From Zygnema circumcarinatum SAG 698-1b (lineage: Eukaryota; Plantae; Zygnematophyceae): a stretch of DNA of 64,000 bases. This document shows positions 17,028 to 41,200 of this stretch, piece by piece. The position numbers and the translations under genes were made by a program. Numbering within the stretch: the first letter of the stretch is position 1; the number at the start of each line of letters is the position of its first letter. Location of the stretch: the NCBI GenBank assembly GCA_037447605.1, contig CM074806.1:1860001-1924000 (forward strand), read 5' to 3'. The notes beneath the pieces are model-generated. The model was not told where the DNA came from, did not search any database, and worked only from the letters and a program-made list of their open reading frames with translations.

Positions 17028-20000
17028 TGTAGCGAAACGCTACAGTCAACCACGGGAGGTGTACTTAGGGCGTACTCCGTCCTGGTACTCTCACCCCGGG
17101 CGCGGGCCGAGTGGTCAAGGCGCCGGGGACCACCTAGGACCAGATAGGTCTTAGGATCGAACCTTCCGAAAATCGCAAGGGTTTTGTAACGCTTAAATGC
17201 AACCGCCGTCCGCATAATTACGTGACCGCTGGTACGGACGATCGACAAGCCGGACTCAAGGCCAGCGGCCAGACTGCCGCCGCAGACCGACAAGACGGGC
17301 GGCGCTGTCGCTGCCGCTGGCAAGGCTACCGCTGAACGCCGGCGAAGTTTCAGACAAGCAGTAACTCCTCGACCATTCGGGTCGATCACACGCGGCGCGG
17401 GTCACACGATGCCTCGCTTCCAATCCTCCATGCTGGTAGGAGGTTCAACGGGGGAAGCATATAGGGGCGAGGTTGGCTGTCGCCAACCAACCAACGCATC
17501 GGCATCTCGTTGCACCTCTCAAATTGTGGCTGCGCCACTTCCGGCTCTCGCTTGCTCTCGCCCTCACAACTCGAGTGCCGGTGTAAAGAGTTCGCCAGCC
17601 GTAAGGAGCGATTTCACTGCTACATTTGGTATCGAGCCGCTGGCGGCCTTCTTTGCCGTAGAACCTCAAGGGTCATGGTGACCACCGCCGGAGGGGGGAC
17701 CCTCGGGGCTCCTCGCTGCCACTTCACCACTGGGCCCCCGACGGTGGTGATGGAGGAGAATCCTGATCAAGGCCGCCCTCTCATGGAGGGGCCCAACAGC
17801 CCACGGGTGACCAAGGCTCGAGAACACCGCTTCTCCGGGATCCAATCGAGCCGTGGGCTCCCGAGAAGCCTCTACAGGCTCTACCCTGATGATCGGGCCC
17901 ACATCGGGCGCGACCCGTAAAATGAGGAAACGTAATTAAAGATCTCGAAGGTGCTGGAGCGTAACGCGGATACGCTGAGCCGCTTCAAGGAAGGTGGACG
18001 ACATGGAGCTCACGGTCCGCCGCCTGGTGGACACGCTCCAAATGGAATTCAGGGGCCTTTCAGATAGGCTCCGGAGGATCGAGGAAGGTATGCCCCACAC
18101 CCCCCCTCAGGCTGTAGAGGCAGTTGATGCGGCAGGTCCTGGGGAAGGGGTTAGGCATACCACTCCGGTCGCGTCGTCATTGCCGACGCCCCAACCGGCC
18201 GCCGGGCAACCGGGTGTAAGTCCGCACTCCCCGGCTTGTCCATTGGGGAGTCACTTCCCCACCTGGCATGCAACCACCCAAAGGGGGGACCCCCGCCGTG
18301 GCAGCTGGCCGGGTGGCAGAGATCCCGCCCCTGACCGCTTCCTCTAAACCCATTGAGGATGCTGCTTTAACCGGCCAAGGTGGCCCCATCTCCGCTTGGG
18401 GTGAACGCCCACACTCTGGACCGCTTCTATCGGTTGGGTCAAACGGTGGCGGGGTTACCTTCGCACTAACCGTCTCTTCAAGGGTAAGCTTCTTTGCTTA
18501 CTTCCAAAGACTCGCAGGGAGCCGCGACACCGCGGTGTATGAGGGCCTCTCTCATGAGATTGGGACGCATCGATAAGTTCAGAGATGAACTTATCAAACA
18601 CTTTGGGGCCTTGGATCCCGGCTTGGAGGCCCGGGATACATTTCAGAACATGGTCCAAACCGGCAGTGTCAAGCAGTTTCTGCGAGACCTGTGTCAAGTG
18701 GTGCCACAAATCACCATACACAAGCCCTCGGCAAGGCCGAAGTTTCTACCACTCGTGAATGGCTTGAAGCCACACCGGTGAAGCAACGGGACTAACCCAC
18801 TCTGACCAAAACCGTGGGACCCCCTCACGACTCGAAATGGGTGACTGATGCAAAATTATTCAATTGACACCGCCCCTCAGCGACATGTAGCCCTTCCCCG
18901 ACCCTTCAAAGCAGAGGCTCCGCGATGATTGTGGTCGTGGAAGGGCGTGATTCCTCGCCCCCTAAGGTGGCGCGTGAAAGAATAAGCTGAAGCAAAACCG
19001 GAACGACCGCCGCCCCACCCAATGTAAGGTCAGCAGGTTGACTCCAGAGGAAATGGAGAAGATGCAGCGGGAAAACAAATGTTTCCGTTGTAGGAAGGAG
19101 GGTCACAAGGCCCGTGATTGTCCTTTAAACACCAAGGACAGGAAGGGCAAGGGGCCGGAAAACCCCAACCCACCAGCAGCTTAGGAGTCGTTGCTGGTGG
19201 GGAGGATAGGCTGGGGAATAAGGGAGAAGTGGCTGCCATCAAGGTTAGGAAATTGTTGTTCCTTCGGCCTCTGGATATTGTGAAATTGATGGGCAGACCT
19301 TTCGGAGTGCATGACTTGTTTGTTTGTAATGCGCTTCCGGATTCCATTCCTCTATCCCCTGCCACTGTGGTGACTCCTTCTAAATTCATGGGTGTAGTGA
19401 TGCATGGTGAATGGCATGTCTTTATCCTCAATGTATTGGGCGATGATGTNNNNNNNNNNCATGCAATTGGCCAAAGCTGTTAAGGAGGGTTGCACCGTGT
19501 TCATGGTGCATGTCATGGCAGCCACTGAGGATGTTCATGACGAAGATCAGGAATGGCAGATCACATCTACGGATGTGCTCTCGGCTGTTCCATCCCAGAT
19601 CCAACCTCTGTTGGATGAATTCAGGGATGTCTTCCTTGATGACCTTCCAAGAGGGTTGCCACCCTCTCGAGGAGTGGGGCATACAATCCCTCTTGAGCCT
19701 GAGCACAAGCCGCCTTGGCGGCCGATCTATCGGTTAAGTCCGAAAGAAACCGAGGAGATGCGAAAGCAGTTGGCAACTTTACGTGACAAGGGCTGGATAG
19801 AACCCAGTCAAAGCCCCTTTGGGGCGCCCATCTTGTTTGTTGGCAAGAAAGATGGCTCGTTGAGGATGTGCATTGATTATCGCGCACTCAACAAGATCAC
19901 CGTAAAGAACCGTTTTGCTTTTCCACGTATTGATGATCTGTTAGATCGTCTTCACGGCGCCAAAGTGTTTACTTCACTTGACCTTGCTCAAGGGTATCAT

Positions 20001-21619: not shown

Positions 21620-22361
21620 TTTCCGGTCCCTTGCCCTTCCTGTCCTTGGTGTTCAAAGGACAGTCACGGGCCTTGTGCCCCTCCTTCCTGCAACGGAAGC
21701 ATTTATTCTCCCGTTGCATCTTCTCCATCTCCTCTGGAGTCAACTTCTGCGGTCTCGCAGTGGCTGGGCGGGCAGCCGCTTCCGGCTGCTTCCGCTTATT
21801 CTTGCCTGCCAGTTTGGCAAGAGCTGAGGGTCCCGCCTTCATCGACCCTAGTACATCACCCGCCCGCTGCTGGGGTCGGGAAGGTCCTGCATCGCTTGCA
21901 GGGGCGGTGTCCAACTGAATGGCTGCATCAAAGTACAGCTCAGAGTCAGCGGGATCCCACGGTGTAACGAACCTGCCTGCAGCAGGGTTCGAACTCAGGA
22001 TCTCCCGGTATTCACCTAAATGCTTTACCATTAAAAGGCAACCGCGGATGTAAGTACTCGGCCATACAACCCATGTATAGCGTTTCGCTACACACGGTTT
22101 CAGAGTCCGTGGGTTAGTCCCTAACTGCTTCCTCAGGTGTGGCTTCAAGCCGTTCCTGAAGTGGTAGAAAAACTCAGCCTGTCCAGGCTTGTGCGTGGTG
22201 ATTTGGGGCACCACTTGGCGCAGGTCTCGCAGAAACTGCTTGACACTGCCGGTTTGGACCATGTTCTGAAATTTATCCCGGGCCTCCAAGCCGGGATCCA
22301 AGGCCCCAAAGTGTTTGATAAGTTCATCTCTGAACTTATCCCAATTGTCCCCAATCTCATC
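21620..22361 (-). mobile_element. G1 gag (retrotransposon gag domain and CCHC knuckle)
   Basis: DPGLEARDKF...QTGSVKQF...FRNGLKPHLR...CFRCRKEGHKARDC; contains the mini-LTR insertion. Confidence 0.88.
21963..22092 (-). mobile_element. 130-bp mini solo LTR with tRNA-like core, TSD CCGTG
   Basis: Minus strand CCGTG|TGTAGCGAAACGCTA...TAATGGTAAAGC...GAGTTCGAACC...GTTCGTTACA|CCGTG. Confidence 0.88.
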
Positions 22362-24102: not shown

Positions 24103-24382
24103 TGTAGCGAAACGCTACAGTCATCCATGGGAGGTGTACTTAGGGCGCACTCCGTCCTTATACCGTCGCCGGGGCGCCGGCTGAGTGGCTAGGGCGCCGG
24201 GCACCACCTAGGAAGGTCCAAGGATCAAACCGTGCGAAAATGTAAGGGTTCGATACGGCGTGATATACATATGTATATATATCGCGTCGCCGAAATGGTC
24301 GAGGATTAGCAAAGTAGTCCGCCATCGGCCATATCTTCCCTTAACGTTTTGGAACGTAACCGTCGTCCGTACAGATACGGGT
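24103..24382 (+). mobile_element. Chromovirus LTR 5' part, inserted into CRE with TSD GCAAT (partner at 49276-49280)
   Basis: GCAAT|TGTAGCGAAACGCTACA; interrupted at 24383 by a copia LTR. Confidence 0.8.
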
Positions 24383-25167
24383 TGTTGATGTATAGGGTAC
24401 ATCAAGGTGTTGGTACTTAGTTCCTAGCATGAATGTTGTCCTGGACATCAATGTGGTGGTATAGGGACAATGTTATGCATGAATGGTCATGTTTGGTGTA
24501 GGACCGAACATGGGGGGTGCCCGTATCGTTAGGGCATGGTNNNNNNNNNNCAGCACTTGAGCGGGCGGCGGATATGTACGGCTGGGCGGCGGACGTGTAC
24601 GGCCGGGCGGCGGAACAGTACGGACGACCTTGCATAGGTCGGTGCTGGCGTAGGCTTACGTGAGACCGTGAAGTTGGCTGTTGAACGCGTAGCTGGCCGT
24701 TGAACGGCTTGCTGGCTGTTGAATGCATGCGCTTGCTAGTGCGCCTGTGACGTGACATCGGTGGTCACGTCACGCCGGCCGACATAGTTTAAGAGGGAGC
24801 AAGCTTGGCTCTCTCACTCACTCAGTCTCTCTGAATGTTATGCTGCTCGACCGTTGTTGTAAAGGAAGAGTAGGTAGAGGCTGAGGCCTAGAGGAGTCCG
24901 GCCTTGTGTATGAAGGTCGTGAAGGAACTAGCTCTCATCATGCTAAGCTTTAGTGAAGGAGCTAGATGGTGTGTCCCTCATGTGTTGAGGTAGAGGAGGA
25001 GTTCATGGAGGCGAGTAGTGCTTGGCTACTGCAGTTGGGGTGTCGGCTATCTATGAGAGGATAGGATAGTGCTCATGTGAGGAGGAGAATCTAGCATACG
25101 GGATCTATGTAGATTTCCTCAAGAGCTTGTATTACACTCATGAAGTTTAAGGAGTTTTAGGGCCGTG
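24383..25167 (+). mobile_element. Copia-type LTR (same family as 20894-21619), incomplete
   Basis: TGTTGATGTATAGGGTACATC... start, then the internal TAAGGAGTTTTAGGGC motif; N gaps. Confidence 0.7.
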
Positions 25168-25177
25168 NNNNNNNNNN

Positions 25178-28033
25178 GACCTTCCCGACCCCAGCAGCGG
25201 GCGGGTGATGTGCAAGGGTCGATGAAGGCGGGACCCTCAGCCCCTGTCAAGCTGGCAGGAAAGACTAAGCGGAAGCAGCCAGAAGCGACTGCTTGCCCAG
25301 CCACTGCGAGGCCGTAGAAGTTGACTCCAGAGGAGATGGAGAAGATGCAGCAGGAGAACAAAGGTTTCTGTTGCAGGAAGGAGGGGCACAAGGCCCGTGA
25401 TTGTCCTTTGAACAACAAGGACAAGAAGGGCAAGGGACCGGAAAACCCCAACCCACCAGCAGCTTAGGAGTCGATGCTGGTGGGCAGGATAGGCTAGGGG
25501 ATAAGGGAGAAGTGGCTGCCATCAAGGTTAGGAAATTGTTGTTCCTTAAAACTCTGGATATTGTGAAATTGATAGGCAAACCTTCTGGAGTGCATGAACT
25601 GTTTGTGTGTAATGCGCTTCCAGATTCCATTTCTCTCTCCCCCGCCACTATGGTGACTCCTTCTGGATTCATGGATGTAGTGATGCATGGTCAATGGAAT
25701 GTCTTTATCCTCAATGTAATGGGCGATGATGTCTTGGTGGAATGTTCCATGGATGCTTTGCATGTCATGAGGGACACATCCCACATCCTTGGGCTGCATG
25801 TGCTGGTTCCTCAGCACATGGCAGTTCGCACTTTTCCCAACGCCACTTGGCGGTTGGTGAAACAGTTGAGGAAAGGGCACCAGTTGGTGCAAGAGATGGA
25901 AGGATCCACCAGCTTGCTGGTTGGATCACCCTACACATTGGTGTGGAGGACTGCTTGTCCTCAAACCCCGCATATAGTGCGTTCAATCTTCCATCTTGCC
26001 CATCGTACCATGACCTTCCAAGGGTCAGCCAATGGCCACCCAGCAGTGTTACTGCTAGACTCTGGGGCAGATGCTAACTTCGTTAGTTCTGCATTCACCA
26101 CCCGTTTTGGGCTGACCACTGACCCCCATTCCGAGAGTGTTACTTTCGGGGATGGACGCAAAGGCCAAATTTCTGGTAGCGTCACACTCAAGATCAAGCT
26201 CCAATCCTACTCCGGGGCGGTCAAGTGTCTTCTGACACAACTGGCCCCTGAAACTGATGTTATTCTCGAGAGTGCTTGGTTAACCATGGTTAAAGCCCAA
26301 CTGGATTTCTCCACCCCTCAGTGCACTTTGCATTGTGGTGATAAGCGCATCACACTGCATCCTGGTAGACCCGCCACCACTGCGCCCAAGCAAGTGGAAG
26401 CTCCTTATCTCTGCTCAGCCATGCAATTGGCCAAAGCAGTTAAAGAGGGTTGTACCTTGTTTATGGTGCATGTCATGGCAGCCACTAAGGATGTGCATGA
26501 CGAAGATCAGGAATGGCAGATCACACCTACGGATGTGCTCTCGGCTGTTCCATCCCAAATCCAACCTCTGTTGGATGAGTTCAGGTGTAACGAACGGTAT
26601 ACATGGAGTGTATGACCTAGTACTTACATCCGCGGTTGCCTTTTAATGGTAAAGCACTTAGGTGAATACCGGGAGGTCCTGAGTTCGAACCCTGCAGGAG
26701 GCGGGTTTGTTACATCAGGGATGTCTTCCCTGATGACCTTCCAAGAGGGTTGCCACCCTCTCGAGGGGTGGGGGACACGATCCCTCTTGAGCCTGAGCAA
26801 AAGCCGCCTTGGCGGCCGATCTATCGGTTAAGTCCGAAGGAAATCGAAGAAATGCGTAAGCAGCTGGCTAATTTACGGGACAAGGGCTGGATTGAGCCTA
26901 GCCAAAGCCCTTTTGGGGCACCCATCTTGTTTGTTGGCAAGAAAGATGGCTCGTTGAGGATGTGCATTGATTATCGCGCACTCAACAAGATCACCGTAAA
27001 GAACCGTTTTGCTTTACCACGTATTGATGATCTGTTGGATCGTCTTCACGGCGCCAAGGTGTTTACATCACTTGACCTTGCTCAGGGATATCATCAAATC
27101 CGTGTTACGGAGGCTGATGTACCAAAGACTGCGTTCCGGACCCCGATTGGTCATTTCCAATATAAGGTGTTGCCCTTTGGATTGACTAATGCTCCGGCAA
27201 CTTTCCAAGCTGTGATGAACGAGATGTTCATAGGCATGGATGAATTTGTTTTGGTTTACCTCGATGACATCCTTGTCTTCAGTAAGACAAAGGAAGAACA
27301 TCTTGAGCACGTGCGAAAAGTGTTTGAGGTTCTGAGGAAAAACCGATTTTATGCCAAGAGGAAGAAGTGTCACTTCATGCAACGTGAGTTGCTATATCTT
27401 GGGCATATTCTCAATGATCAGGACCTTCGGCCAGACCCTGCCAAAGTTTCGACGGTAGAAACTTGGGCGGCACCGACTGACTTACATCAGTTGAGGTCAT
27501 TCTTGGAATTTGCGAATTATTTTCGTAAGTTCATCCAAGGGTTTAGTAAATTGGTTACTCCCTTGACTAATTTGACACGTTCCGGTGTCCCCTTTGTATG
27601 GACCCCTGAGTGCAAGGAAGCATTCGAGGGTGTGCGCCATGCACTTGTTACCGCACCCACTCTCTGTTTAGCGGACCCGTCAAAACTATATGAGGTGGTT
27701 TGTGACGCTTCGGGATTCGCCTTGGGTGCCGTTTTGTTCCAAGATGGTCAACCTTTGGCTTATGAAAGTCACAAGATGAATCCCGCTGAGCGCAACTATT
27801 CTGCAACAGAACAGGAACTGCTTGTAGTTGTCCACGCCCTGAGGACATGGCGTTGCTATTTAGAGGGGGCGAAAGCGGTCACGTTGGTCACAGACCATCG
27901 CCCGTTGACGTTCCTCTCGACCCAACAGACACTGTCTAGGCGGCAGGCACGCTGGTCTGAGTTCCTCCAAAGGTTTGACTGCCAGTGGGTCTATCCGCAA
28001 GGCAGGCTGAATGTCACGGACCCACTGAGTAGG
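25178..28033 (+). mobile_element. Chromovirus gag end, extra domain, protease, RT, RNase H (best-preserved copy)
   Basis: ORFs 25401-26615 (LLDSGADANF) and 26750-28138 (YLDD, CDASG); interrupted by the mini-LTR at 26586. Confidence 0.92.
26586..26714 (+). mobile_element. 129-bp mini solo LTR with tRNA-like core, TSD TCAGG
   Basis: TCAGG|TGTAACGAACGG...TAATGGTAAAGC...GGAGGTCCTGAGTTCGAACC...GTTTGTTACA|TCAGG; homologous to 21963-22092. Confidence 0.9.
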
Positions 28034-28043
28034 NNNNNNNNNN

Positions 28044-31000
28044 GGGGCCGGAAAACCCCAACCCACCAGCAGCTTAGGGGTCGCTGCTGGTGGACATGCT
28101 CGGTTAGGGGAAGGGATGGAAGCTGCCGCCAGACCTAGGGGACATTTGTTTCTTAGAACCTTGGACATTCTTAAATTGATTGGCAGACCTTTGGGAATGC
28201 ACGATCTCTTTGTGTGTGATGCACTCCCTGTTTCCATTTCCCTCTCCCCTGCCACTGTAGTGACTCCTTCTGGGTTTATGGATGTAGTGATGAATGGTGA
28301 TTGGCATGTCTTTATCCTCAATGCCATGGGCGATGATGTTCTCATGCAATGTGCCATGGATGCTTTGCATGTCATGGGAAACACCTCCCATGTCCTTGGG
28401 CTGCATGTGCTGGTTCCTCAGCACATGGCAGTTCGCACCTTTCCCAACGCTACTTGGAGGTTGGTGAAACAGTTGAGGAAAGGGCACAAATTGGTGCAGC
28501 CGATGGAAGGATCCACCAGTTCGCAGGTTGGATCACCCTACACCTTGGTGTGGAGGACGGCTCGTCCTCAACCCTCGCATATAGTGCGATCCATGGTCCA
28601 TCTTGCCCATCGTGCCATGACCTTCAGAGGGTCAGCCAATGGCCACCCAGCAGTTATACTGCTAGATACAGGTGCAGATGCTAACTTCGTCGGCTCTGCA
28701 TTCACCCTCCGTTTTGGGTTGACCACAGATCCCCATTCAGAAAGTGTTACTTTCGGGGATGGACGCAAGGGCCAGATCNNNNNNNNNNCCAATTGGACTT
28801 TTCCATCCCACACTGCATTCTGCACAGTGGGGATAGGCGCATCACACTGCACCCTGGCAAACCCACATCCACTGCTATCACGCAGGTTGATACTCCTTAT
28901 CTCTGCTCGGCTATGCAATTGGCCAAAGCAGTTAAGGAGGGTTGCACCTTGTTCATGGTGCATGTCATGGCAGCCACTGAGGATGTTCATGACGAAGATC
29001 AGGAATGGCAGATCACATCTACGGATGTGCTCTCGGCTGTTCCATCCCAGATCCAACCTTTGTTGGATGAATTCAAGGATGTCTTCCCTGACGACCTTCC
29101 AAGAGGGTTGCCACCATCTAGGGGGGTGGGGCACACAATCCCTCTTGAGCCTGAGCAAAAGCCGCCTTGGCGGCCGATCTATCGGTTAAGTCCGAAGGAA
29201 ACCGAGGAAATGCGAAAGCAGTTGGCAACTTTACGTGACAAGGGCTGGATAGAACCCAGTCAGAGCCCCTTTGGGGCGCCCATCTTGTTTGTTGGGAAGA
29301 AAGATGGTTCGTTGAGGATGTGCATTGATTATCGTGCACTCAACAAGATCACCGTAAAGAATCGATTTGCTTTACCACGTATCGATGATCTGTTGGATCG
29401 TCTTCACGGCGCCAAAGTGTTTACTTCGCTTGATCTTGCTGGGGTATCATCGGATCAGCGTCCGCGAGGCGATGTACTTAAAGCGCGTTCGAGCGCGCCC
29501 GATTGGTCATTCAATATAAGGTCGCCTTTGGATTGATGATGTCTCCGGCAACTTTCGGGCTGTCGCGGGCGAGATGTTCGGCGCTGAAACGAGGGGCATT
29601 TTGGTTTACCTGGGTGATATCCTTGTCTTAGGTAAGGCGGAGGAGGAGCATCGCTGAACCGTTCGAAAAGTGTTTGGAGAGCCTGAAACACAGTTTTATG
29701 CCAGAGGAAGAAGTGTCATTTTCATTTTAGCGATAGAGTTGCTTTATCTTGGGCATATCACGAATGATCGGGGCCTTCGGCTGATCACCTTAAAGTTTGT
29801 GGTGAAACTTGAAGCCACCGGCCCGACTTGCACCGGTTGAGGTCTTTTACGGGCTTTGCGAATTATTTTCGTAAGTTCATCGAAGGGTTTAGTAAGTTGG
29901 TGACTCCCTTGACTAATTTGACACGTTCCGGTGTCCCCTTTGTATGGACCCCTGAGTGCCAGGAAGCATTCGAGGGTGTCCGCCATGCACACTTATTCAC
30001 AGCACATACAAGGTTTGGCGGACCGTCCAAACCTTATGAGGTAGTTTGTGATGCTTCAGGATTAAGCCTTGGGTGCGGTCTTGTTTCAAGATGGTCCAAC
30101 CTCTGGCGTATAAGCATAAAATGAATCCCGGTGGCCCTTACATTACATTCCATAGCAAACGAGGGGCGCTACTGATGCGGTCACGCCGCGAGGACATAAG
30201 CGGTGCTGTTAGAAGCGGCGGTCCACGGTCACTGACCACCGCCAGCAGCGTTCTCTCTACCAGACCACAGTTTGGCGGCAAACGCGCTAGTCTGAGTTCC
30301 TCCAAAGGTTTGGCGCGGTAGGTCTATCGGCCGAGAAGGCGATGCTAGCGAACCCAACTGGCGGCTTCGGCATCTTGCACGGATAGTGCTTGTCATTTCG
30401 GTGTTGGTGGAGCGAGATGGCAGAGGTGAGGGGCGGCCAACCCGGTCTCAGTCTCGGTATGCTTTGTCATAGATCCTCACGATGGCCTTGATCAACCCTC
30501 CTGCTCTCTCGATCTCGGACAGATGATTCGGGGAGGGTATCTTTAGTGATCCTTTATTCTGGATGGCCAGGTGTGGCTATAAGGACAAGTGGTGCCCTAG
30601 GGGCGGATTTGGTACCCGCGACGTGAGTTAGTGCGTGCCCAAGGCGGACTTGTCTGGCGACTCATTACAGTGGCTCCATGATCCTCCGTCACGGGGGTCA
30701 CATGGGAGTTGCCAAAACCGCGTGAGGCCTTTGCTCGAGGAGTACGGTGGCACAGACTCACCGAGGGGCGTGGCGTATGCTGCAGCTTGTCCAACTTGTC
30801 CATGAGAACAAACCTGCTTGTGGCGGGATCACGGCGATTTGCGACCCCTCACACCTCCTTTTTGAAATGGGATGGTGTGGGTATGGACTTGATCACAGAT
30901 CTTCCTGTGACACCTCGGGGGCATGACTCCATCCTCGTCTTTGTCGATCGGCTCAGCANNNNNGTGCATTTTNNACCAACTNCTAAGNNNNNNGNNNNNN

Positions 31001-32783
31001 NCNNNATTGCACGGTTGTATGTTGANAAAGTGTGGAGCCAGCATGGTCTTCAGTCAGAAATTGTGTCTGACCGTGATCCACGATTCACCGGCCATTTTTG
31101 GACGGAAGTGCTCAAAATCGTTGGGACCAAGCAGGCGTTGAGTACAGCTTTCCACCCGCAAACCGATGGCCAGACGGAACGGGTGAACAGGATCCTGGAG
31201 GATTACCTCCGGCATTATGTGGGACCTACCCCGGATGGGTGGGACGAACTGCTCCCAGTGGCTGAGTATGCCATCAATAATGCTTTCCAGGAGTCCATTG
31301 GTACCACCCCTTTCTTCCTGAATTTTGGTCAGCATCCCCTAAATCCCCTGCAACCAAGGGATCAGTCCCCTGATCCGTGGAACATGGGCGTCCACAGAAA
31401 CCCCGATCCTTGGAAGGCTGAGAGGGGTAGAAGGGACTCAACCCCTCCCTTGATGAATCTTTTGTCGGCTAATATGCGGCTGCGAGAGGAGCCGCGGCAG
31501 ACCACCTTTAGCGGCCCGGTCGCGACAAAGGCCTATCGACGCGTCCGTCACCCAACTCACCTTCAAAGAGAGGCGATGAGGTGTTCTTTGATACGGTGAA
31601 CTTGAACTCAAAGCTTGTAGTGGAACCGTAAGTTGTGGCCCTTCGCCGGACCCTTCAAGGTAAATGGCGCATCAATGAGTCGCTTACGGTTGGATTTACG
31701 GACCATATGAAGGTGCATCCGGTCTTTCATGTGGGATTGCTAAAAGCCTACGCGTGATGGGAGGATCGGCCACCTCCCCACCGGTGGAACGGTGAACTTG
31801 AGTATGAAGTTGGAAACCATTCAAGCCCACGTATTGTGAGAAAGATGGATTCTTCCCGTCACGAATACCTCATTGAAGTAGGATTTGGGCTATGGGGTTG
31901 AACATAGCACATGGGAAGTCGAGGGCAACTTAACCAATTGCCAAGAGCTCATCAATTTGTACTGGGAGGCGCAGGCCGCAGGAGAGCGGGCGAGGGCGGC
32001 TCGGGGGATTCCTGAGCCGTCCCCGCGCAACTCGGAAAGGGACTTGACGGGGATTATCGCTGAGCCCTCCCGGTTATCACGTAGAGTTCGACGCGTGCCG
32101 TTGAAACTACGAGCTGCCTTTACCACCCCACACCTGTGAACGAGGGCGTTCACATTCTCACAGGGGGGAGTAATGTAGCGAAACGCTACAGTCACCCACG
32201 GGAGGTGTACTTAGGGCGTACTCCGTCCTAGTACTCTCACCCCGGGCGCGGGCCGAGTGGTCAAGGCGCCGGGGACCACCTAGGACCAGATAGGTCTTAG
32301 GATCGAACCTTGCGAAAATCGCAAGGGTTTTGTAACGTTTTGGAACGTAACCGTCGTCCGTACAATTACGGGTGACCGTTGGTACAGACGGACTGACAAT
32401 CGGACCCCGCGCCGCGCGCGTAGGATCCGGCCGTGCACCGACGTACGGCGGCGCGCCGCGTCGCGGCGCGCGCCGCGGAATGCGGCGAGCGTACGTACGT
32501 TCAACTCCTCTGACCCATTCGGGTCAGAGATGGACACGTGGCAGTCTGCCATTGGACAGCCCTGCTTCCAATCCTCCATGCTGGTAGGAGGTTCAACGGG
32601 GGAAGCATATAGGGGCGAGGTTGGCTGTCGCCAACCAACCAACGTACCGGCATTCGGTTGCACCCCTGACCAGGGCTGCGCCACTCTCTGAAGCTCTCGC
32701 TCTTGCTCTCGCCCTCTCGCTGAACTCTGAGTGCTGGTGTGTTATTCCGCGCAGGTTGAAGGAGTTAGATTTCAGCCGTTACA
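28044..32783 (+). mobile_element. Chromovirus pol (extra domain to chromodomain) with PPT and 610-bp 3' LTR (32174-32783)
   Basis: DTGADANF, RT, integrase FHPQTDGQTER, chromodomain GYGVEHSTWE; PPT CAGGGGGGAGTAA; LTR TGTAGCG...CCGTTACA. About 29450-30900 is indel-rich. Confidence 0.88.
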
Positions 32784-33578
32784 TATCGTGGCGGATGCGG
32801 TATGTGGCCCAAGTTGAAGATGAAGAAAGTTTTGAGCTTCATCCGGGCATGTGTTTTCCTTCCCTTAAGCCCTGCCCCTTGCACCAACACGCGCAACTCG
32901 GAAAGGGACTTGACCGGGATTATCGCCGAGCCCTGCCGGTTATCACGTAGAGTTCGACGCGTGCCGTTGAAAGTACAAGCTGCCTTTACCACCCCACACC
33001 TGTGAACGAGGGCGTTCACATTCTCACAGGGGGGAGTAATGTAGTGAAACGCTACAGTCATCCATGGGAGGTGTACTTAGGGCGCACTCCGTCCTTGTAC
33101 CCTCGCCGGGGCGCCGACCGAGTGGCTAGGGCGCCGGGCACCACCTAGGAAGGTCCTAGGATCGAACCTTGCGAAAATGCAAGGGTTCGATACGGCGCGA
33201 TATACGTAGGTATATATATCGCGTCGCCGATTTGGTCGAGGATTAGCAAAGTAGTCCGCCATCGGCCATATCTTCCCTTAACGTTTTGGAACGTAACCGT
33301 CGTCCGTACAGATACGGGTTACCGTTGGTACGGACGGACTGACAATCGGATCCCGCGCCGCGAGCGCAGGATCCGGTAGTGCACCGACGTACGGCGGCGC
33401 GCCGCATCGCGGCGCGCGCCCGTGGAACGCGGCGAGCGTTCGTACGTTGTACTCCTTTGACCCCGTTCGGGTCAGAGACGGACACGTGGCAGATTGCCAT
33501 TGGACAGCCCTGCTTCCAATCCTCCATGTTGGTAGGAGGTTCGACGGGGGAAGCGTAAAGGGGCGTGGGTGACTGTCG
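32784..33578 (+). mobile_element. Copia LTR 3' end (32784-32889), then chromovirus 3' UTR, PPT and LTR starting at 33040
   Basis: ...CCTGCCCCTTGCACCAACA matches the end of the 20894 copia LTR; CAGGGGGGAGTAA|TGTAGTGAAACGCTACA. Duplicated at 37224 onward. Confidence 0.75.
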
Positions 33579-33588
33579 NNNNNNNNNN

Positions 33589-34855
33589 GTCCCTTTCCGA
33601 GTAGCGCGTGGACGGTTCGGGAACCCCCCTAGCCGCACTCGCCCGCTCACCAGCGGTCTGCGCCTCCCAGTACAATCTCAGGAGCTCCTTGCTATTTGTC
33701 AGATTGCTCTCACGTTCCCACGTGCTATGTTCAACCCCATAGCCCAACCATTTCACGAGATATTCGTGGCGGAAAGTCTGACCTCTACTCACTGTCCTGT
33801 GTGTCTGAATGGCTTCAACCTCATACTCGAGATCACCTTCAACTTCCACTGGAGGGGGAGGTGGTTGGACTCTCCCATCGTTGCGGTATGCCTTAAGAAG
33901 ACCCACATGAAAGACCGGATGCACCTTCATATGAGCCGGTAAAGCCAACCGGTAAGCGACTTCACCGATTCGCTTCATGACCGAAAAAGGTCCCATGGAA
34001 CGAGGCCACAACTTGCGGGTTCCGCCGTAAGTTTTCAGGCGCAAGTTTGCCGTACTCAGCAATACCTGATCGCCCTCGGCGAAGGTTAATGCAGCACGAC
34101 GACGATCAGCATAGGCTTTCTGCTGCGACTGGGCTGCTAACAGGGTCTGCCTTGCCCTCTGTAACGCCTCGGACATTTTCCGAGTAAAAGCACTAACGGC
34201 GGGAGGTTGACTCCCGCCAGCTCCTCTCATGCCCCAAGGATCTGGGAGCCTGTGAACATCCATGTTCCACACATCTGGCTGCTGATCTCTTGGCTGCAGG
34301 GGATTTAGAGGATGCTGACCAAAGTTCAAGAAGAAAGGAGTGGTACCGATTGATTCCTGGAATGCATTGTTAATGGCATACTCAGCCACCGGGAGCAGTT
34401 CATCCCATCCATCCGGGATGGGTCCCACATAATGCCTCAAATAGTCTTCCAGAATCCGGTTCACCCGCTCAGTTTGGCCATCTGTCTGAGGGTGGAAGGC
34501 TGTACTCATAGCCTGCTTAGTCCCGATAATCCGGAGGATTTCTTTCCAAAATGGCCGGTGAATCGGGTATCACGATCTGAGATGATCTCAGATTGAAGTC
34601 CATGTTGACTCCGGACCTTGTCAACATATAGCGTGCTATCTGCGTCGGCTCTGTTGTCTTAGCGGTGGTACGCAAAATGCACCATCTTGCTGGGGCGATG
34701 CGACAAACGCGAGGATGGAGTCCAGCGGCGGTCCGCGAGCAGAGTGCGGTCGGTCCATACCAGCACTTTCCACTTCTTGTAAGGAGGAGGGCGTTTGGAG
34801 CAAGCCGGGCACCCGATCGGTCGCGAGCTTATCCCGTTGACAAGTTGGGCATGCG
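33589..34855 (-). mobile_element. Minus-strand chromovirus integrase-chromodomain fragment (divergent family)
   Basis: ORF 33472-34509: FHPQTDGQTER...VHPVFHV...EYEVEAIQ..YLVKWLGY..TWE. Confidence 0.88.
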
Positions 34856-36564
34856 TGTAGCGAAACGCTACAGTCACCCCAAGGGTGAAGGGTTACTTAG
34901 AGCCCGGCGTGGCTTTATGTTTCCATCCAATGCAGTACCTAACGGTTAGGGCATCGGATACCCTATAGGACGACGGAGGTCCTAGGTTCGAACCATAAGA
35001 ACTGGTTCACCCGTGGGGCCGCCACATAATCTCTATGGGCCCCACGTCAGCGGCCAAGGTCCCCTCCTCTCAGCGTAGAGGAGGATCACGGACTAACGGC
35101 ACCACGGGACCAATCCGGTCTCGCGATTGGATATCGGGCCCCGGCCCGGATCCCCCTTTGGACTTCCGTCGATACAATACTTGATTTACCCGTTGATGCA
35201 GACGAGGTGTCGGTCGGACCCAGCGTAGCCTCGTAGGCTTCGGACCCGTGCACCCGACTACGGCGTGGCGTCGCCCAGCAGCGCCCGTATCGTCGACGAG
35301 CATTAAATGCGTTATACACCTACGACCCATTAATTGAGAGAGGGACCTTACGTCTTGATCTGCCATTGGGCGGCCACACTTCAATCCTCCATGGCGGTAG
35401 GAGGTTCCAGCGGGGGCGTAAAGGGGGGCGAGGGGTGACTGTCGTCACCCAACCAGCGATACCGGCATCACGGTTTACCGCGGCCATCCGGGCTGCTCCC
35501 CACTACGAAAGCGCCCTCTCTCTCGAAGCCCTCTCATTACGAACTGTTTTCTTTGAGTCGCGGTTGAGATGCAATTCAGCGCGAAAGAAGGTAGATTTCA
35601 GTTGTTACATTGGTATCGAGCGTTAGCGGCCTTCTTCTTTTGGAAGAACCTAGTGGGTCATGGTGACCACTCGCCGGGCGGGGAGGGACCCGGGGCCCTC
35701 GGGGCCGCCACCTCCACCACCCGGCCCCCGGGACGCGGAGATGGAGGAGGACTCGGAGACGACGCCCGTCCCTATGGAGGGGCCGAGTCCCGAGCCCACG
35801 GGTGATCAAGGTCACCCGGAGACCACCGCCCCTCTCCCCACCCAACCGGAGCCCGTGGCTCCGGTAGAAGCCTCAACTGGGCCCTACCCCATGATCGGGG
35901 CCCACATCACCGTGGGCGCGGCCCAGAAGATGAGGAACAGGATTGAGGATCTGGGGAAGAGCGTGAGGGAGCAGAACGTGAATACGTTGAGCTGCTCAAG
36001 GAAGGTGGACGACATGGAGCTCACGGTCCGCCGTCTGGTGGACACGCTCCAAATGGAGTTCCGGAGCCTTTCGGACAGGTTCCGAAGGATCGAGGAAGGT
36101 ATGCCCCGAACCCCCCCTCAGGCTGTAGAGGCAGTGGATGCAGCAGGTCCTGGGGAAGGGGTTAGGCAAACCACTCCGGTAGCGTCGTCTGTCCCGACGC
36201 CCCAACCGGCTGCCGGAAGCAGCCGGCAGAAGTCCGGACCCCCTGGTTTTTCCACGGGGGGAAGTCACTCCCATGGGGGTGGCGAACCACCTAGCGAGTG
36301 GGGACCCGTGGTGGCATTTCTTTGGCCGGAGAGATCGATCCTGGTGCTCCCATAACCCTAGGATGCGGGAATGAACCCAGGTGGCCCCTCTTTCCTTTTT
36401 AGGCCCGAACATCCTACCGCGGACTGCCGATTGGCGGTGGTTGGGTCAAACGAAGGGTTACCTTCTTGCGACCAAGCTGTCCCCCCCTCCCAGTGGGTAA
36501 GCTTGCTTACCCGGCACTGAAGGAGCATGCAGGTATTGTATGAGGGCCTCTCGATGAATGAGGG
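34856..36564 (+). mobile_element. Chromovirus 5' LTR (34856-35609), PBS and gag start
   Basis: ATGCG|TGTAGCGAAACGCTACA...GTTGTTACA, then TGGTATCGAGC; gag N-terminus MVTTRRAG at 35660. Confidence 0.8.
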
Positions 36565-36664: not shown

Positions 36665-38140
36665 ACTTTAGGGCGCATCGTCCTGTACTTCCTCACCGGC
36701 CGGGCCCCAGTGGTCATGCCGGGGACCACCTAGGACCGATAGGTCTTAGGATCGAATCTGGGCGAAACGCGAAGGGTTTCCGTAACGCTTTTTGAATCTT
36801 TAACCGTCCGCATAATTACGGGTAACCCGGCACGATCAATCGACCGCTACCAAGGCGCCAGGATCCTCGCCGTGCATCGACGTGACGGGCGGCAAGCGCC
36901 GCTGCCGCGATACAAGGCCGCTGAACGCCGGGCGCAGCGCCGACGCTGCACCTCCCACCATTCGGGTCGAGATCTTACACGCGGGCGGTTGCCACCGGGA
37001 CGTTCTTCTGCTTCCAATCCTCCATGCCGTAGGGAGGTTCAATCTGGGAAGCATAGCAGGTTGGCCGCCGCCAACCAACCAACGTACCGGCATTCGGTTG
37101 CACCCCTGACCAGGGCTGCGCCACTCTCTGAAGCTCTCGCTCTTGCTCTCGCCCTCTCGCTGAACTCTGAGTGCTGGTGTGTTATTCCGCGCAGGTTGAA
37201 GGAGTTAGATTTCAGCCGTTACATATCGTGGCGGATGCGGTATGTGGCCCAAGTTGAAGATGAAGAAAGTTTTGAGCTTCATCCGGGCATGTGTTTTCCT
37301 TCCCTTAAGCCCTGCCCCTTGCACCAACACGCGCAACTCGGAAAGGGACTTGACCGGGATTATCGCCGAGCCCTGCCGGTTATCACGTAGAGTTCGACGC
37401 GTGCCGTTGAAAGTACAAGCTGCCTTTACCACCCCACACCTGTGAACGAGGGCGTTCACATTCTCACAGGGGGGAGTAATGTAGTGAAACGCTACAGTCA
37501 TCCATGGGAGGTGTACTTAGGGCGCACTCCGTCCTTGTACCCTCGCCGGGGCGCCGACCGAGTGGCTAGGGCGCCGGGCACCACCTAGGAAGGTCCTAGG
37601 ATCGAACCTTGCGAAAATGCAAGGGTTCGATACGGCGCGATATACGTAGGTATATATATCGCGTCGCCGATTTGGTCGAGGATTAGCAAAGTAGTCCTTC
37701 ATCGCCATATCTTCCTTTAACGCTTTTGGGACCGCGGAACTGGCCGGCCCTCGCATGTGATACGGGTTACCGCTGGTACGACGACGACACCGATCTTCCG
37801 CCGCTGTTGTGATCCTCGGGTAGTGCACTCTGACAGACGCGCGCGCCGGCGCGCGCTCGCGGAACGCTGGGCGAAGAAGCCAGACGTTGTAAAATTCTTT
37901 TGACCCCGCTCGGGTCGACGCATACGTGGCAGATTGCCATTGGATTTCGCTTCCAATCTCCATGTTGCAGGAGGTTCCCACGGGGTATGCGGGTGACTGG
38001 CCGTCACTCCAACCAACGCATCGGCATACGTTGTATTCCCCGCCTAGGGTCAGCGCTCTCGAAGCTCTCTCTCTCTCTCTCTCTTTTCTTGATTGTTCGG
38101 GCCGAAAAGTGTGTTGAGTGTTATTCGCCAAGCACGCACC
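36665..38140 (+). mobile_element. Degraded or duplicated chromovirus LTR segments (LTR end 37223, next LTR start 37480)
   Basis: 37069-37697 appears identical to 32629-33257; the flanks are error-rich. Confidence 0.65.
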
Positions 38141-38279: not shown

Positions 38280-41200
38280 TGTAACAACCTCGCCGGCAAA
38301 GCCGCCTCGGGCGTCTGGGCGTGTCGAAGAGGGAGGAGAGAGAGAGAGAGAGAGGAGCGAGCCAAATGCTGGTACAAAGAGCTTCCTGATGGTCTTCCCA
38401 CCGGGCAGCCCCTTAAGCTCCCCCTCGCTGGAACCCCCTACCAGCAGGACCCGAGCGGACCGCCTCAATCGGCTCCCGCCATGCGGCGGAGATCCTTAGC
38501 CGAATTATCGGGCCGTGAGCCACAAGCCCGCGGGTCTCACAAGATCTTCATCGCGCGCCGCGACGCGGCGCTGCCGTCGCGGTACCGCGTATCGCTGGCA
38601 CCGACAGAAATGACTCGCCACCGGCCCGCATGTAAAGACGACGGTACTTGTCAAAGATGCTGCCGCGATTCGCGTCGCGCCGCTGAAGCGGTGTGCGCCG
38701 ACGCGGCGGCGGCGCTACGCCGATTCTGGCTGGTGATCTGTATAGCCGAAAAAGAGGTCTCGTACCTGTACGGACGACCAAAGATGATCCAAAAAGAGAT
38801 CCCTTGCCCGCGGCAAGGATCGAGCCCAAGACCTCTTGTGGTCTCGGCAGCGTCTTAGCCTATCGGCTAGACGCTGAGATGAAGGGATAGTCATAGTATC
38901 ACTATGAGTACGCCTCCAGGGTCACGCCGCTGTAGCGTTACGCCTACATTACTCCCCTCAGGAGTATGCGAACGCCGCTCACCGGGAGAAGTAATCTGGC
39001 GTTCTCGCCAGCTTTGCGAGGTATTCGCTCTTCGCCTCGCGGGTGTGTACGGGAGGCTCGCCAAGTAATCCCCGCCAAGTCCCTTTCCTCTCGAGTAGCG
39101 CTGCGGATCGTTCGGGAACCCCCAGTCAGCATTTCCCGCCGCCACGCCGGGTTCAGCCCCGTGCTATAATCTCAGAGCTTCCTCGGTATATTTTGGTCGT
39201 GATTACCACGTTCCCACGCATATGTTCAACCCCATAGCCTAACCATTTCACGGTGATATTCGCGGGCGGAAAGTCTGACCTCTATCATCAGCTCCCCGTG
39301 GTGTTCAATGGCTTCAACCTCATATCACTCTAGATCACCTTCAACTTCCACCGGAGGGGAGGTGGTTGGATTCTCCCATCGCTATGTATGCCTTAAGAAG
39401 ACCCACATGAAAGACCGGATGCACTTTCATATGAGCCGGTAAAGCCAACCAGTAAGCGACCTCACCGATTCGCTTCACGACCGTAAAAGGTCCCATGAAG
39501 CGAGGGGCTACAACTTACCGTTCACGTGAAGTTCGTAAGTTCGACAGTGTTTCCACAGCATTCTATCGCCTCAAATAAGTTGTTAATGCAGCACGCATTT
39601 ATCATCAAGATAGCTTCTTCTCGCCATGACTGGCCGCTAATGTGGTCTCAGCTTTGCCTCCTCTCAGAACGCCGGACATTTTCCGAGTGAAAGCACTAAC
39701 GGCGGGAGGTTGACTCCCGCCAGCTCCTCTCATGCCCCAAGGATCTGGGAGCCTGTGAACATCCATGTTCCACACATCTGGCTGCTGATCTCTTGGCTGC
39801 AGGGGATTTAGAGGATGCTGACCAAAGTTCAAGAAGAAAGGAGTGGTACCGATTGATTCCTGGAATGCATTGTTAATGGCATACTCAGCCACCGGGAGCA
39901 GTTCATCCCATCCATCCGATGGGTCCCACATAATGCCCTTCACATAGTCTTCCGTAATCCCGTTCACCCGCCAGCTTAATATCCAATTGAGGGTGGAAGG
40001 TCGCATCAGAGTCGCTTAGCTCCGGAGAACCGAGGATTTCCTTAAATGGCCGTGAATCGGTATCACGACCAGATGATCTCGCATTGAAGTCCATGTTGAC
40101 TCCAGACCTTGTCAACATATAGCCGTGCTATCTCGTCGGCTCTCGCTGTCTTAGCAGTGGCTGCAAAATGCACCATCTTGCTCAGGCGGTCGACAAACAC
40201 GAGGATGGAGTCAACACCCCGAGCGGTCACAGGCAAGTCTGTGATCAGGTCCATACCCACACTTTCCCACTTCTTGTAAGGAGGGGCGAGGGGCTGGAGC
40301 AAGCCAGGCACCGATCCGGTGCGAGGCTTATCCCGTTGACAAGTTGGGCATGCGTGTAGCGAAACGCTACAGTCACCCCAAGGGTGAAGGGTTACTTAGA
40401 GCCCGGCGTGGCTTTATGTTTCCATCCAATGCAGTACCTAACGGTTAGGGCATCGGATACCCTATAGGACGACGGAGGTCCTAGGTTCGAACCGTAAGAA
40501 CTGGTTCACCCGTGGGGCTGCCACATAATCTCTATGGGCCCCACGTCACCGGCCAAGGTCCCCTCCTCTCAGCGTAGAGGAGGATCACGGACTAACGGCA
40601 CCACGTGACCAATCCGTTCAAGGATTGATCTCGGCCGCGCTCCGGATCCCCTTTGGATTCTTCTTCCGCTCGTCCGTACAATAATCTGGGCACCCGCTGG
40701 TACGGACGGATCGCCGGGCCGACCCGCTGCCGCTGCCGTAGGGCTCGACCGCACCGATTTCACGGGCGGGCGCTGTCAAGGTTACAAGGCCATGAATGCG
40801 GCGAGCATTCGTATTGCTTGTACACCTCTCACCCATTCGAAATGAGAGGGACACGGGCAGTTCCGCCATTGGATGTTTCGCCTAACTCTCCATGCCGGTG
40901 AGGTTCAACGGGGAAGCGTATATGGTGGGTGACTGCTGTCACCAACTAACGCATCGCATACGGTTGCACGCGCCATCCCGGCTGTTCCCCACTCAAGCGC
41001 CCCTCTCTCTCGGCCCTCTCATTCTCGAATCCTCGCTTTGCCGAGGCCGGGTTGAGTGCAATTCCGCGCAGGCTGAAGAAGGTAGATTTCAGCTGTTACA
41101 TTGGTATCAGAGCCGCGTTGCGGCCTTCTTCTTTTGGGAGAACCTAGTGGGTCATGGTGACCACTCGCCGGGCCGGAGGGGACCCGGGGCCCTCGGGGCC

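Follow-up and report, generated by a model that had tools for sequence, protein, structure and literature searches.

A tRNA-like cassette in the LTRs of a chromovirus family and in miniature LTRs of Zygnema circumcarinatum

Do the long terminal repeats (LTRs) of a chromovirus carry a tRNA-derived element, and what could such an element be doing there? This question is raised by a 64,000-nt stretch of the Z. circumcarinatum genome (contig CM074806.1, positions 1,860,001 to 1,924,000; hereafter the window), for which an earlier note described a tRNA-like cassette with an A-box and a B-box in the LTRs and interpreted it as a captured tRNA promoter. The observation was confirmed; the interpretation is partly supported. 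To our knowledge, LTRs with promoters of small-RNA genes are known only from the miniature, non-autonomous elements Cassandra, Helenus and Ajax, and for these, Cassandra included, we know of neither an autonomous partner nor an origin of the cassette.

Cassette copies and their host element

A covariance model of the cassette (R1) was run over the 64-kb window and recovered exactly ten copies with scores of 44.6–105.8 bits, with no further match above 13.3 bits anywhere in the 64 kb (Table 1). All ten are oriented sense to the element and lie about 63–160 nt from the start of the LTR. The LTRs that bear them fall into five sublineages with an identity of only 40–67%, and the LTR head TGTAGCGAAACGCTACAGTCA occurs 7 times in the window, compared with 0 expected matches. 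The motif strings reported in the earlier note at 32251 (plus strand), 13770-13713 and 38869-38817 (both minus strand) are present there, and those assigned to 24103, 33040 and 40355 were also found, but 60–85 nt further in, as these coordinates are the LTR starts. The copies in LTRs H and F and the cassettes E and I had not been listed before. The assertion that all chromovirus LTRs carry the cassette holds for every LTR of the family in the window, but not for six relatives from other assemblies, in which the cassette is absent.

Table 1. Positions of cassettes, LTRs, mini-LTRs and coding regions in the window.
Feature	Position	Strand	Details
Cassette A	32237..32334	+	105.8 bits; D-arm/A-box-like, GGTC, T-arm/B-box-like; predicted three-hairpin fold
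LTR A, 610 nt, ends ..GTTACA	32174..32783	+	preceded by polypurine tract AGGGGGGAG
LTR H, 597 nt; cassette 17091-17188	17028..17624	+	102.6 bits; followed by initiator tRNA-Met PBS
LTR B, 3'-truncated; cassette 24165-24255	24103..24383	+	84.4 bits
LTR C, cut by N run; cassette 33102-33192	33040..33578	+	97.7 bits
Cassette E, LTR start 37480	37542..37632	+	same sequence as C across the cassette
Cassette I, degraded A-type copy; LTR head lost in N run 36565-36664	36690..36783	+	60.9 bits
LTR G1, 701 nt; cassette 13688-13785	13144..13844	-	95.7 bits
LTR F, 754 nt; cassette 34922-35012, standard GGTTCGAACC box	34856..35609	+	65.3 bits; followed by PBS
LTR D, 746 nt; cassette 40421-40511	40355..41100	+	65.2 bits; followed by PBS TGGTATCAGAGCC
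LTR G6, 669 nt, most divergent lineage; cassette 38794-38887	38280..38948	-	44.6 bits; fold z -5.4
Solo mini-LTR 1, 129 nt, TSD TCAGG	26586..26714	+	inserted in a chromovirus copy, between its protease and RT regions
Solo mini-LTR 2, 130 nt, TSD CCGTG	21963..22092	-	90% identity to mini-LTR 1
Internal region of 5'-truncated copy with 3' LTR A	28044..32173	+	degenerate gag-pol
ORF with integrase C-terminus and chromodomain, neighbouring copy	33472..34509	-	Pfam SH3_Tf2-1 5e-21, Chromo 1.1e-14

Pfam domains of the window comprise RVP_2, RVT_1 and RT_RNaseH, and the family is assigned to the chromoviruses because an ORF with an integrase C-terminus and a chromodomain is present; thus the order protease, reverse transcriptase, RNase H and integrase, a C-terminal chromodomain, LTRs, a primer binding site (PBS) as well as a polypurine tract (PPT) were all found. 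The internal region upstream of LTR A is decayed: a tblastn comparison with the relative P0001 crosses 3 frame changes as well as 17 in-frame stops. Right after the LTRs lies the PBS TGGTATCAGAGC, by which the family is primed by initiator tRNA-Met, and this PBS matches a plant-type tRNAiMet (L006:1089-1160). An 860-aa ORF had no counterpart among recorded sequences, and flanking ORFs gave no Pfam match. The relatives carry PF00385, and Volvox is the source of one named relative. When the cassette model was applied to the loci L001-L123 and L125-L129, the only matches with E≤1 were at background level (best 15.1 bits). A pattern match on a viral contig (L124) was dismissed as a chance hit in AT-rich DNA without a tRNA, and a protein scan of the viral contigs found no relative.

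Two solo mini-LTRs, each flanked by a 5-bp target-site duplication as in Helenus/TRIMp3, carry the same module. Mini-LTR 1 consists of a chromovirus-type head, a tRNA-like core (positions 19-74 of the tRNA-Asn profile, E 1e-4) and a GTTACA tail, and at paralogous empty sites TCAGG is present once. In the mini-LTRs, head, cassette and tail correspond collinearly to the initial ~165 nt of the chromovirus LTRs, so that at sequence level the module is common to both, whereas the downstream promoter block of the long LTRs is missing. The window contains the mini-LTRs as solo copies only, and they may represent a TRIM.

Likeness to tRNA genes

In a blastn-short comparison with a library of 227 fetched tRNAs, the cassette yielded two separate, collinear, same-strand matches to tRNA arms (E 0.004 and 6.5e-5). 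The D-arm half corresponds to positions 9-27 of tRNA-Ser (17/18 in A and H, 13/13 in G1, 15/16 in C), while the variable loop and T-arm correspond to positions 42-58 of tRNAiMet (17/17 in C, with 15/16 in A and 17/18 in G1 for the T-arm match). The nine top matches of a tRNAiMet profile in the window are all cassettes, and tRNA profile matches generally cluster on the cassettes and mini-LTRs. A degenerate pattern made up of cassette letters only retrieved 126 metagenome matches, 67 of which were tRNA-Met(CAT) genes according to ARAGORN. The columns that never vary among the cassettes and genuine tRNAs correspond to A14, G18, G19, G53, T55, C56, A58 and C61; these residues of the D-loop and T-loop are universal in tRNAs. 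The boxes are homologous to tRNA arms and follow tRNA order and spacing (50 nt from A-box to B-box in A, H and G1), as in SINE heads. The proposed succession of A-box/D-arm, GGTC and T-arm/B-box is therefore collinear with real tRNAs, and at the level of sequence the cassette is tRNA-derived.

The cassette is nevertheless no longer a tRNA. We required a cloverleaf model score of at least the gathering threshold (29 bits) for a tRNA gene, and no cassette reached it; RF00005 gave no match at E≤10, whether the whole window, the 161 nt around copy A or mini-LTR 1 was searched, so the tRNA covariance-model score anticipated for the cassette did not materialize. ARAGORN called only two true tRNAs in the window, at 7827 and 9060, and no cassette. 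The best Rfam match, RNAI with 15.4 bits, merely reflects the presence of three stem-loops. The suggested covariation of D- and T-stems also failed, as the proposed stems were no better than shuffles: 67% of the cells were paired in alignment A2, less than the mean of the shuffles, and a single compensatory cell was counted, with the T-stem columns off by one; sliding the columns by -1 brought the T-stem into register and the D-stem out of it (64% paired). The cloverleaf has been lost and the acceptor and anticodon stems are missing, which agrees with the SINE-head-like decay described earlier.

Matching of textbook consensus strings for the two boxes, each 11 nt long, was abandoned as a statistic since it is uninformative at loose thresholds: 81 matches were found at 8/11+9/11 (80.5 expected) and 4 at 10/11+9/11 (1.15 expected). 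A T4 run 20–30 nt downstream, which the earlier note gave for the motif at 32251, exists in copies A and H only and a nearby terminator is not conserved; in G6 a T5 run directly follows hairpin 3, and in mini-LTR 1 a T4 lies within the D-loop-like part. For annotation this calls for caution, as tRNA finders overlook the module and loose box matching detects it no more often than chance.

Conservation, predicted fold and candidate function

The best-conserved 20 nt of the whole LTR are those of the B-box block, where mean pairwise identity is 0.76 and 13 of 20 columns are invariant, compared with roughly 0.4 over the full LTR (read off 20-column windows); the A-box window reaches 0.58. The statement that the boxes persist while U3 diverges, and with it the proposed constraint on the cassette, is confirmed by these values, which show strong constraint on the B-box block. 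Another conserved stretch, a TATA-like block, is located downstream of the cassette at LTR A positions 410-429.

How can this constraint be explained? We see about an even chance that the cassette of ~98 nt is a degenerate tRNA module of the SINE-head or Helenus type which is under selection and acts as a candidate Pol III/TFIIIC site; judged from sequence, a Pol III/TFIIIC-type function of the selected module is the most likely one. The precedent of Helenus and Cassandra backs this reading (PMC10886601). The module would have been fixed about 63–160 nt into U3 of the family's ancestor and then kept in all five sublineages, and a mini-LTR derivative would have arisen that is made of little besides the module. 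The boxes would serve as an internal Pol III promoter of type 2 or as a TFIIIC-binding site. Non-autonomous derivatives tend to retain the parts required in cis, and in the mini-LTR element, which is too short to house a Pol II promoter, the module may supply transcription or another cis-required function. In the autonomous LTR of 600–750 nt, the genomic RNA would come from another promoter further downstream; the cassette would be bound by TFIIIC and might yield a short RNA with three hairpins. Pol III cannot make a genomic RNA of 6–8 kb, so that a benefit of the module for the autonomous element is not evident, and the missing tRNA model call, the near-chance consensus matching and the variable placement of the T runs also speak against a Pol III module.

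The main rival is a structured cis element in U3, in which three hairpins, formed either by plus-strand DNA or by the genomic RNA in its 3' untranslated end, would be needed for packaging, for replication or for forming the 3' end. The box residues would be retained as stem arms or protein contacts, and the tRNA likeness would be a relic; we consider this possible, if the less probable of the two. It draws on the predicted fold, as three hairpins were obtained in every lineage with the box nucleotides as stem arms. RNAfold gave -49.5 kcal/mol for copy A (z -5.0), and z is close to -5 for A, G1 and G6. In total 80% of the hairpin cells are paired, compared with 47% after a one-column shift of the partners. 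Covariation, with a score of 0.205 (0.154 in shuffles, reached by 0/500), is a modest signal; the alignment was fitted to the structure, and it comprises only five independent lineages, which makes the covariation statistics weak. An example of a compensatory change is GAACC/GGTTC in most lineages and GATCC/GGATC in G6; the pairing of hairpin 1 is kept in G6 and F/D despite almost wholly different letters, and in the stems there are 26 G-U pairs and 9 A-C pairs. Since box nucleotides take part in compensating hairpins, an RNA or DNA structure fits as well as a protein-bound promoter. Relatives at 50–63% protein identity have LTR starts that are rich in hairpins (z of -4.7, -4.4 and -2.9 for the first 140 nt of L125, L002 and L126) yet devoid of boxes, which favors the structured element and argues against the Pol III module, and the region has been retained by the mini-LTRs. 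On the other hand, the most invariant columns are universal tRNA loop residues and not the covarying stem positions, and hairpins 1 and 2 are not kept in the mini-LTRs. Of nine copies, seven have the more stable fold in sense orientation, whereas F and D have it in antisense, so that a comparison of energies was not decisive for the strand of the structure.

A Pol II enhancer, in which palindromes (CCTAGG, TTCGAA, GGCGCC etc.) would bind dimeric factors and both tRNA likeness and folds would be by-products, appears improbable. The cassette does lie upstream of the TATA-like block, and sense and antisense folds are alike in C and G1, but the collinear similarity to two tRNA arms would be left unexplained, as would retention in a 130-nt LTR without the downstream promoter block.

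We find it very unlikely that the cassette is related to priming, either as a second PBS half which pairs with tRNAiMet or as a T-arm mimic that recruits the same proteins. In Ty3 the PBS is bipartite, with parts at opposite ends of the RNA and the 3' part annealing to tRNAiMet (Gabus et al. 1998, as summarized in PMC11381356), and such a part must be complementary to the tRNA. The family shares with Ty3 its membership in Ty3/gypsy, the initiator tRNA-Met primer, whose PBS adjoins the LTRs, and, close to the genomic RNA's 3' end, a sequence related to tRNAs, but unlike the Ty3 part the cassette has the same sense as the tRNA and no special complementarity to it. Duplexes between the cassette and plant-type tRNAiMet were in the range of shuffles and ranked 35th to 198th among the 227 tRNAs, which largely refutes a Ty3-like pairing. 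The initiator-type T-loop GGATCGAA is found in 7 of 10 cassettes and in 67/67 of the retrieved tRNAiMet genes; however, at the position specific for initiators a T or a C is present in F/D, G6 and the mini-LTRs, which makes the A in the other copies probably a derived state of one clade. An origin of the cassette from the primer tRNA itself is weakened by the same outlying sequences, and a mixed profile of non-initiator tRNA-Met scores about equally. A chance resemblance of a GC-rich hairpin region to A- and B-boxes, for which the only point is that loose consensus matching yields as many matches as in simulated sequence, is hardly credible in view of the two collinear arm matches among 227 tRNAs, their recurrence in lineages 40–67% identical, the universal residues in the invariant columns and the real tRNA genes retrieved with the cassette-derived pattern.

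Relation to miniature retrotransposons and SINEs

The earlier note named no tRNA-type equivalent of Cassandra. Such a counterpart has been published with the Helenus TRIMs ('TRIMp3', Kojima 2024), and 'not a few' Repbase LTRs hold tRNA-like parts (PMC10886601), so that tRNA-bearing LTRs themselves were already known; what is not found in PMC10886601 is an autonomous chromovirus that shares a tRNA-derived module with a miniature derivative. The window elements resemble Helenus in the tRNA-derived LTR stretch with conserved A- and B-boxes from which no working tRNA is predicted, in an ordinary PBS and PPT of the LTR-retrotransposon type and, for the mini-LTRs, in the 5-bp target duplications of plant and fungal Helenus and in size, 129–130 nt being close to the 120 nt of Helenus-1_SMo (PMC10886601). 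Membership in the same family as this Selaginella element was rejected, as none of the window k-mers occur in its published LTR. Helenus is a non-autonomous TRIM of roughly 0.3–1.3 kb, in which two short LTRs enclose nothing but a PBS and a PPT (PMC10886601), whereas the ten cassette LTRs, with 600–750 nt, flank gag-pol with a chromodomain and are thus not short non-autonomous elements. TRIMp3 and its autonomous partners were moreover expected to have no long LTR stretch in common (PMC10886601), unlike the mini and long LTRs of the window with their common head, cassette and tail. With Cassandra the family would share an LTR carrying an internal Pol III promoter from a small-RNA gene (PMC10886601), here as a candidate only. 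The source is 5S rRNA in Cassandra and tRNA in the window, where no 5S family of Rfam matched at E≤10.

Because the chromovirus copies and the mini-LTRs have the same head, module and tail, the chromovirus is a candidate autonomous partner, and the module ties it to the Helenus class of tRNA-bearing miniature retrotransposons. We tentatively propose that an autonomous chromovirus keeps a working TFIIIC/Pol III module under purifying selection, and that such LTRs give rise to Helenus-type miniatures through reduction to head, module and tail, not through a SINE landing in an existing TRIM. If so, the window would suggest a route of origin for tRNA-bearing miniature LTRs, and the autonomous element and its parasite would have one common Pol III-type cis element, possibly also a short three-hairpin RNA. 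In common with SINE2 heads, the cassette has kept the boxes and the D-/T-arm sequence, with acceptor and anticodon stems decayed and no tRNA model score left. Unlike SINE2 heads, it has no LINE-type tail, occupies a fixed place in the LTR from which it is propagated by LTR-type replication, and has flanks that appear remodelled into three covarying hairpins.

The chromovirus family and its cassettes

The window is a nest of degenerate Ty3/gypsy copies in which Pfam domains for protease, RT and RNase H are present in several ORFs, and an integrase SH3 domain with a chromodomain identifies the family as a chromovirus. All pol copies are broken: compared with P0001, a protein of a relative, the copy with LTR A as its 3' LTR carries 3 frame changes and 17 in-frame stops, and the other seven pieces 0-4 frame changes and 0-9 stops each (counts only). 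Full LTRs measure 597-754 nt, are preceded by a polypurine tract and end in ..GTTACA; their head TGTAGCGAAACGCTACAGTCA was found 7 times on the plus strand (none expected), with 2 further heads on the minus strand. Directly 3' of the LTRs lies TGGTATC(A)GAGC, the classic primer site for initiator tRNA-Met. Its complementarity to the 3' end of a plant-type tRNAiMet gene (L006:1089-1160) confirms the initiator assignment.

Ten LTRs carry the tRNA-like cassette (D-arm/A-box, GGTC, T-arm/B-box), always in sense to their own element and roughly 63-160 nt from the LTR start. When the ten aligned copies were made into a covariance model, it recovered exactly these ten in the 64 kb searched (44.6-105.8 bits; best non-cassette score 13.3 bits). 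The copies, named like their LTRs, form five sublineages (A, H, I; B, C, E; G1; F, D; G6), between which LTR identity is 40-67%. The strings quoted in an earlier note are present in the window, and of its coordinates 24103, 33040 and 40355 turned out to be LTR starts, the motif being found 60-85 nt further in. Owing to two assembly gaps, LTR C is cut short at the 3' side and LTR I lacks its head; adjoining the gaps is a duplication that may be an assembly or a segmental duplication.

Features in the window, with positions and strand where defined
Feature	Position	Strand	Remark
LTR A	32174-32783	+	
Cassette A	32237-32334	+	
Conserved LTR block	32583-32602		LTR A positions 410-429
Integrase SH3 domain and chromodomain	33472-34509	-	
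B-box-like 3' arms of hairpin 3 (B, C, E, G1)	24247-24257, 33184-33194, 37624-37634, 13692-13702(-)		10/11 match to B-box consensus
Mini-LTR 1	26586-26714	+	target duplication TCAGG; in pol region of a chromovirus copy
Mini-LTR 2	21963-22092	-	target duplication CCGTG
N runs	33579-33588, 36565-36664		assembly gaps
Duplication	32618-32917 / 37058-37357		99% identity, spacing 4440 nt
True tRNA gene	7827-7897	+	Rfam 48.6 bits
True tRNA gene	9060-9130	-	Rfam 51 bits
Inverted repeat holding the tRNA genes	7544-7954 / 9003-9408		77% identity
Inverted repeat	6016-6349 / 6725-7058		334 nt, 99% identity
Satellite	61815-62656		AGAAGCC (TRF), ~120 copies, 89% matches

Likeness to tRNAs

The earlier note had looked to a tRNA covariance-model score, and none was obtained: the Rfam tRNA model gave nothing on the cassette at E≤10, even with only 161 nt searched, and ARAGORN made no tRNA call on the cassettes. 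The best Rfam match was plasmid RNAI (32200-32360; 15.4 bits, E 0.81), a three-stem-loop look-alike that is biologically meaningless here. Textbook box consensus strings gave 81 matches vs 80.5 expected when matched loosely; stricter matching (10/11+9/11) returned the two true tRNAs and copies A and H, vs 1.15 expected. By textbook box consensus the cassette is thus barely tRNA-like.

By homology to real tRNAs it is clearly tRNA-like. Metagenome contigs were scanned with a pattern of cassette letters only, and 67 of the 126 matches lay, in the same orientation, within tRNA-Met(CAT) genes called by ARAGORN, every one of them of eukaryotic initiator type. Among 227 distinct tRNAs from the pattern-matched loci, the best match to the 5' half is the tRNA-Ser D-arm (positions 9-27), scoring 17/18 for copies A and H, 13/13 for G1 and 15/16 for C. 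For the 3' half it is the stretch of tRNAiMet comprising variable loop and T-arm (positions 42-58), where C scores 17/17, G1, F and D each 17/18, and A 15/16. All nine top-scoring window matches of a tRNAiMet profile are cassettes, and class II tRNA profiles span both halves, weakly, in a single alignment. Invariant columns of the joint cassette-tRNA alignment correspond to A14, G18, G19, GGTC, G53, T55, C56, A58 and C61, universal tRNA residues that also belong to the A and B boxes. On these alignments the cassette is a tRNA-derived, SINE-head-like module; the cloverleaf has been lost. Judged by the same matches no single source tRNA can be named, the D-arm being Ser-like and the T-arm initiator-Met-like in one clade; at the initiator-specific position, other letters are present in F/D, in G6 and in the mini-LTRs, and a mixed profile of non-initiator tRNA-Met does about equally well as the initiator profile.

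About 20 metagenome contigs from a few projects (including L004, L008, L013, L032, L038, L039, L042, L050, L056, L060, L071, L074 and L108) share the string AGGTCCGGGGATCGAATCCTGG, on which ARAGORN makes no tRNA call; this is perhaps a repeat of tRNA origin from a eukaryote present in the samples. The two true tRNA genes of the window are near-identical and inverted, and both are flanked by CAG/CTG-rich tandem repeats with periods of 92-102. ARAGORN reads their anticodon as a 4-nt 'gcaa' and in the Rfam alignment the anticodon stem is one base short on its 5' strand; they therefore look like Cys(GCA)-type tRNAs with a shortened stem.

Miniature LTRs and relatives

The tRNA profiles match two further window sites, both solo LTRs of 129-130 nt (mini-LTRs 1 and 2) that are 90% identical to each other; uninterrupted paralogues of the mini-LTR 1 insertion site have a single TCAGG. 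They share the head kind of the chromovirus LTRs at the 5' end and GTTACA at the 3' end, and are collinear with the first ~165 nt of the chromovirus LTR, the shared part taking in the A-box-like site, GGTC and B box as well as a portion of the third predicted hairpin. Their tRNA-like stretch is longer than that of the cassette (profile positions 19-74, E 1e-4), and the Rfam tRNA model made no call on mini-LTR 1, the one searched. The module is common to the chromovirus LTRs and a miniature LTR consisting of little else.

Helenus elements are TRIMs of fungi, animals and Selaginella; their LTRs hold a stretch derived from a tRNA, in which the boxes are conserved. They parallel the 5S-rRNA-derived Cassandra, with a tRNA in place of 5S rRNA, and both have been grouped as 'TRIMp3' (Kojima 2024, PMC10886601). 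The same study mentions 'not a few' Repbase LTRs with tRNA-like parts, of which only TRIMs under 1 kb were followed up, and argues that a long LTR stretch common to TRIMp3 and autonomous partners is unlikely. The published Selaginella Helenus LTR differs in sequence from the mini-LTR, and later papers cite Helenus only in passing. In an incomplete coverage of the literature we found no report of an autonomous chromovirus with such a tRNA-derived module.

The nearest proteins to the pol and integrase-chromodomain of the window are only 50-63% identical. In the six relative contigs read (L001, L002, L125, L126, L128, L129), several of which resemble the window's family in the palindromic make-up of the LTR head and share its PBS, we found neither the cassette nor a comparable tRNA profile match at its place, and the claim that all chromovirus LTRs carry it holds for the family in this window but not for these relatives. 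Where folded, the first 140 nt of the relatives' LTRs are hairpin-rich (z -4.7, -4.4, -2.9); the module therefore characterises this family and is superimposed on a hairpin-rich 5' U3 of greater age. One relative (L129, 55% identical in the integrase-chromodomain) has a long hairpin ~460 nt into its LTR (1490-1565) with B-box-like arms (GGATTGAACC.. / ..GGTTCGATTCC) and weak tRNA profile matches, and B-box-like palindromes may recur in LTRs of this chromovirus clade.

Conservation, fold and possible function

Mean pairwise identity in 20-column windows among LTRs A, G1, F and G6 reaches 0.76 in the B-box block (13/20 columns invariant) and 0.58 in the A-box window, vs roughly 0.4 for the whole LTR as read off the same windows; the boxes do persist while U3 diverges, as the earlier note had it. 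The module was fixed in the ancestor of the family and is under constraint. The other best windows are the head (0.72) and the block near position 410-429 (0.72), which ranks second in conservation among the internal blocks of the LTR. Like its homologous places, this block adjoins a TATA-like stretch on its 3' side and may serve the autonomous element as core Pol II promoter.

Three successive hairpins are predicted for the cassette in every lineage. The A-box/D-arm motif lies inside hairpin 1. In hairpin 2, GGTC plus the two leading G of the B box make up the 3' arm, and the remainder of the B box forms the 5' arm of hairpin 3, pairing with a downstream inverted copy. In B, C, E and G1 this copy in turn resembles a B box, so that each of these cassettes has two B-box-like sites, inverted and 18 nt apart. 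The fold z-score lies near -5 in A, G1 and G6, with weaker values in B, I and F. Counted on a model-fitted alignment of five lineages, 80% of cells are paired (47% with partners slid one column), the covariation score is 0.205 (0.154 in shuffles; reached in 0/500), and 11 cells are changed on both sides (4.7 in the control). Compensation is seen at the outer pairs of hairpin 1, with GC, CG, AU and UG types at one position, and in GAACC/GGTTC of most lineages vs GATCC/GGATC of G6; both G6 and F/D also retain the pairing of hairpin 1 with nearly every letter changed. Since the lineages number five and the alignment was fitted, this covariation of the three hairpins is suggestive, not proof. The D-/T-stem covariation proposed earlier found no support (the T-stem columns were set one column off; the intended register is included in the slid control). 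G-U pairs exceed A-C pairs in the stems (26 vs 9) and the sense fold is stabler than the antisense in 7/9 copies, only weak hints that sense RNA would be the folded species.

We infer that the cassette acts as a Pol III/TFIIIC-type element, because its boxes are conserved, Helenus and Cassandra provide a precedent, and the mini-LTR is too short to accommodate the conserved TATA-like block found further downstream. Several points speak against such a role: the T runs are not conserved in place, a T4 run ~20-30 nt after the boxes being present in A and H only, a T4 lies inside the D-loop-like part of mini-LTR 1, and the long genomic RNA is beyond Pol III. The main rival is that the cassette is a structural U3 element in which the box letters persist as arms of the stems. 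The idea of a second, Ty3-like primer site (background in PMC11381356) was rejected, special complementarity of the cassette to tRNAiMet being absent.

Elsewhere in the window, the arms of the 334-nt inverted repeat include sequence that is homologous to part of the chromovirus LTR's 3' half (~80% to 32395-32581), and the satellite, with its 7-nt unit, appears with a 14-nt period in a direct-repeat search.
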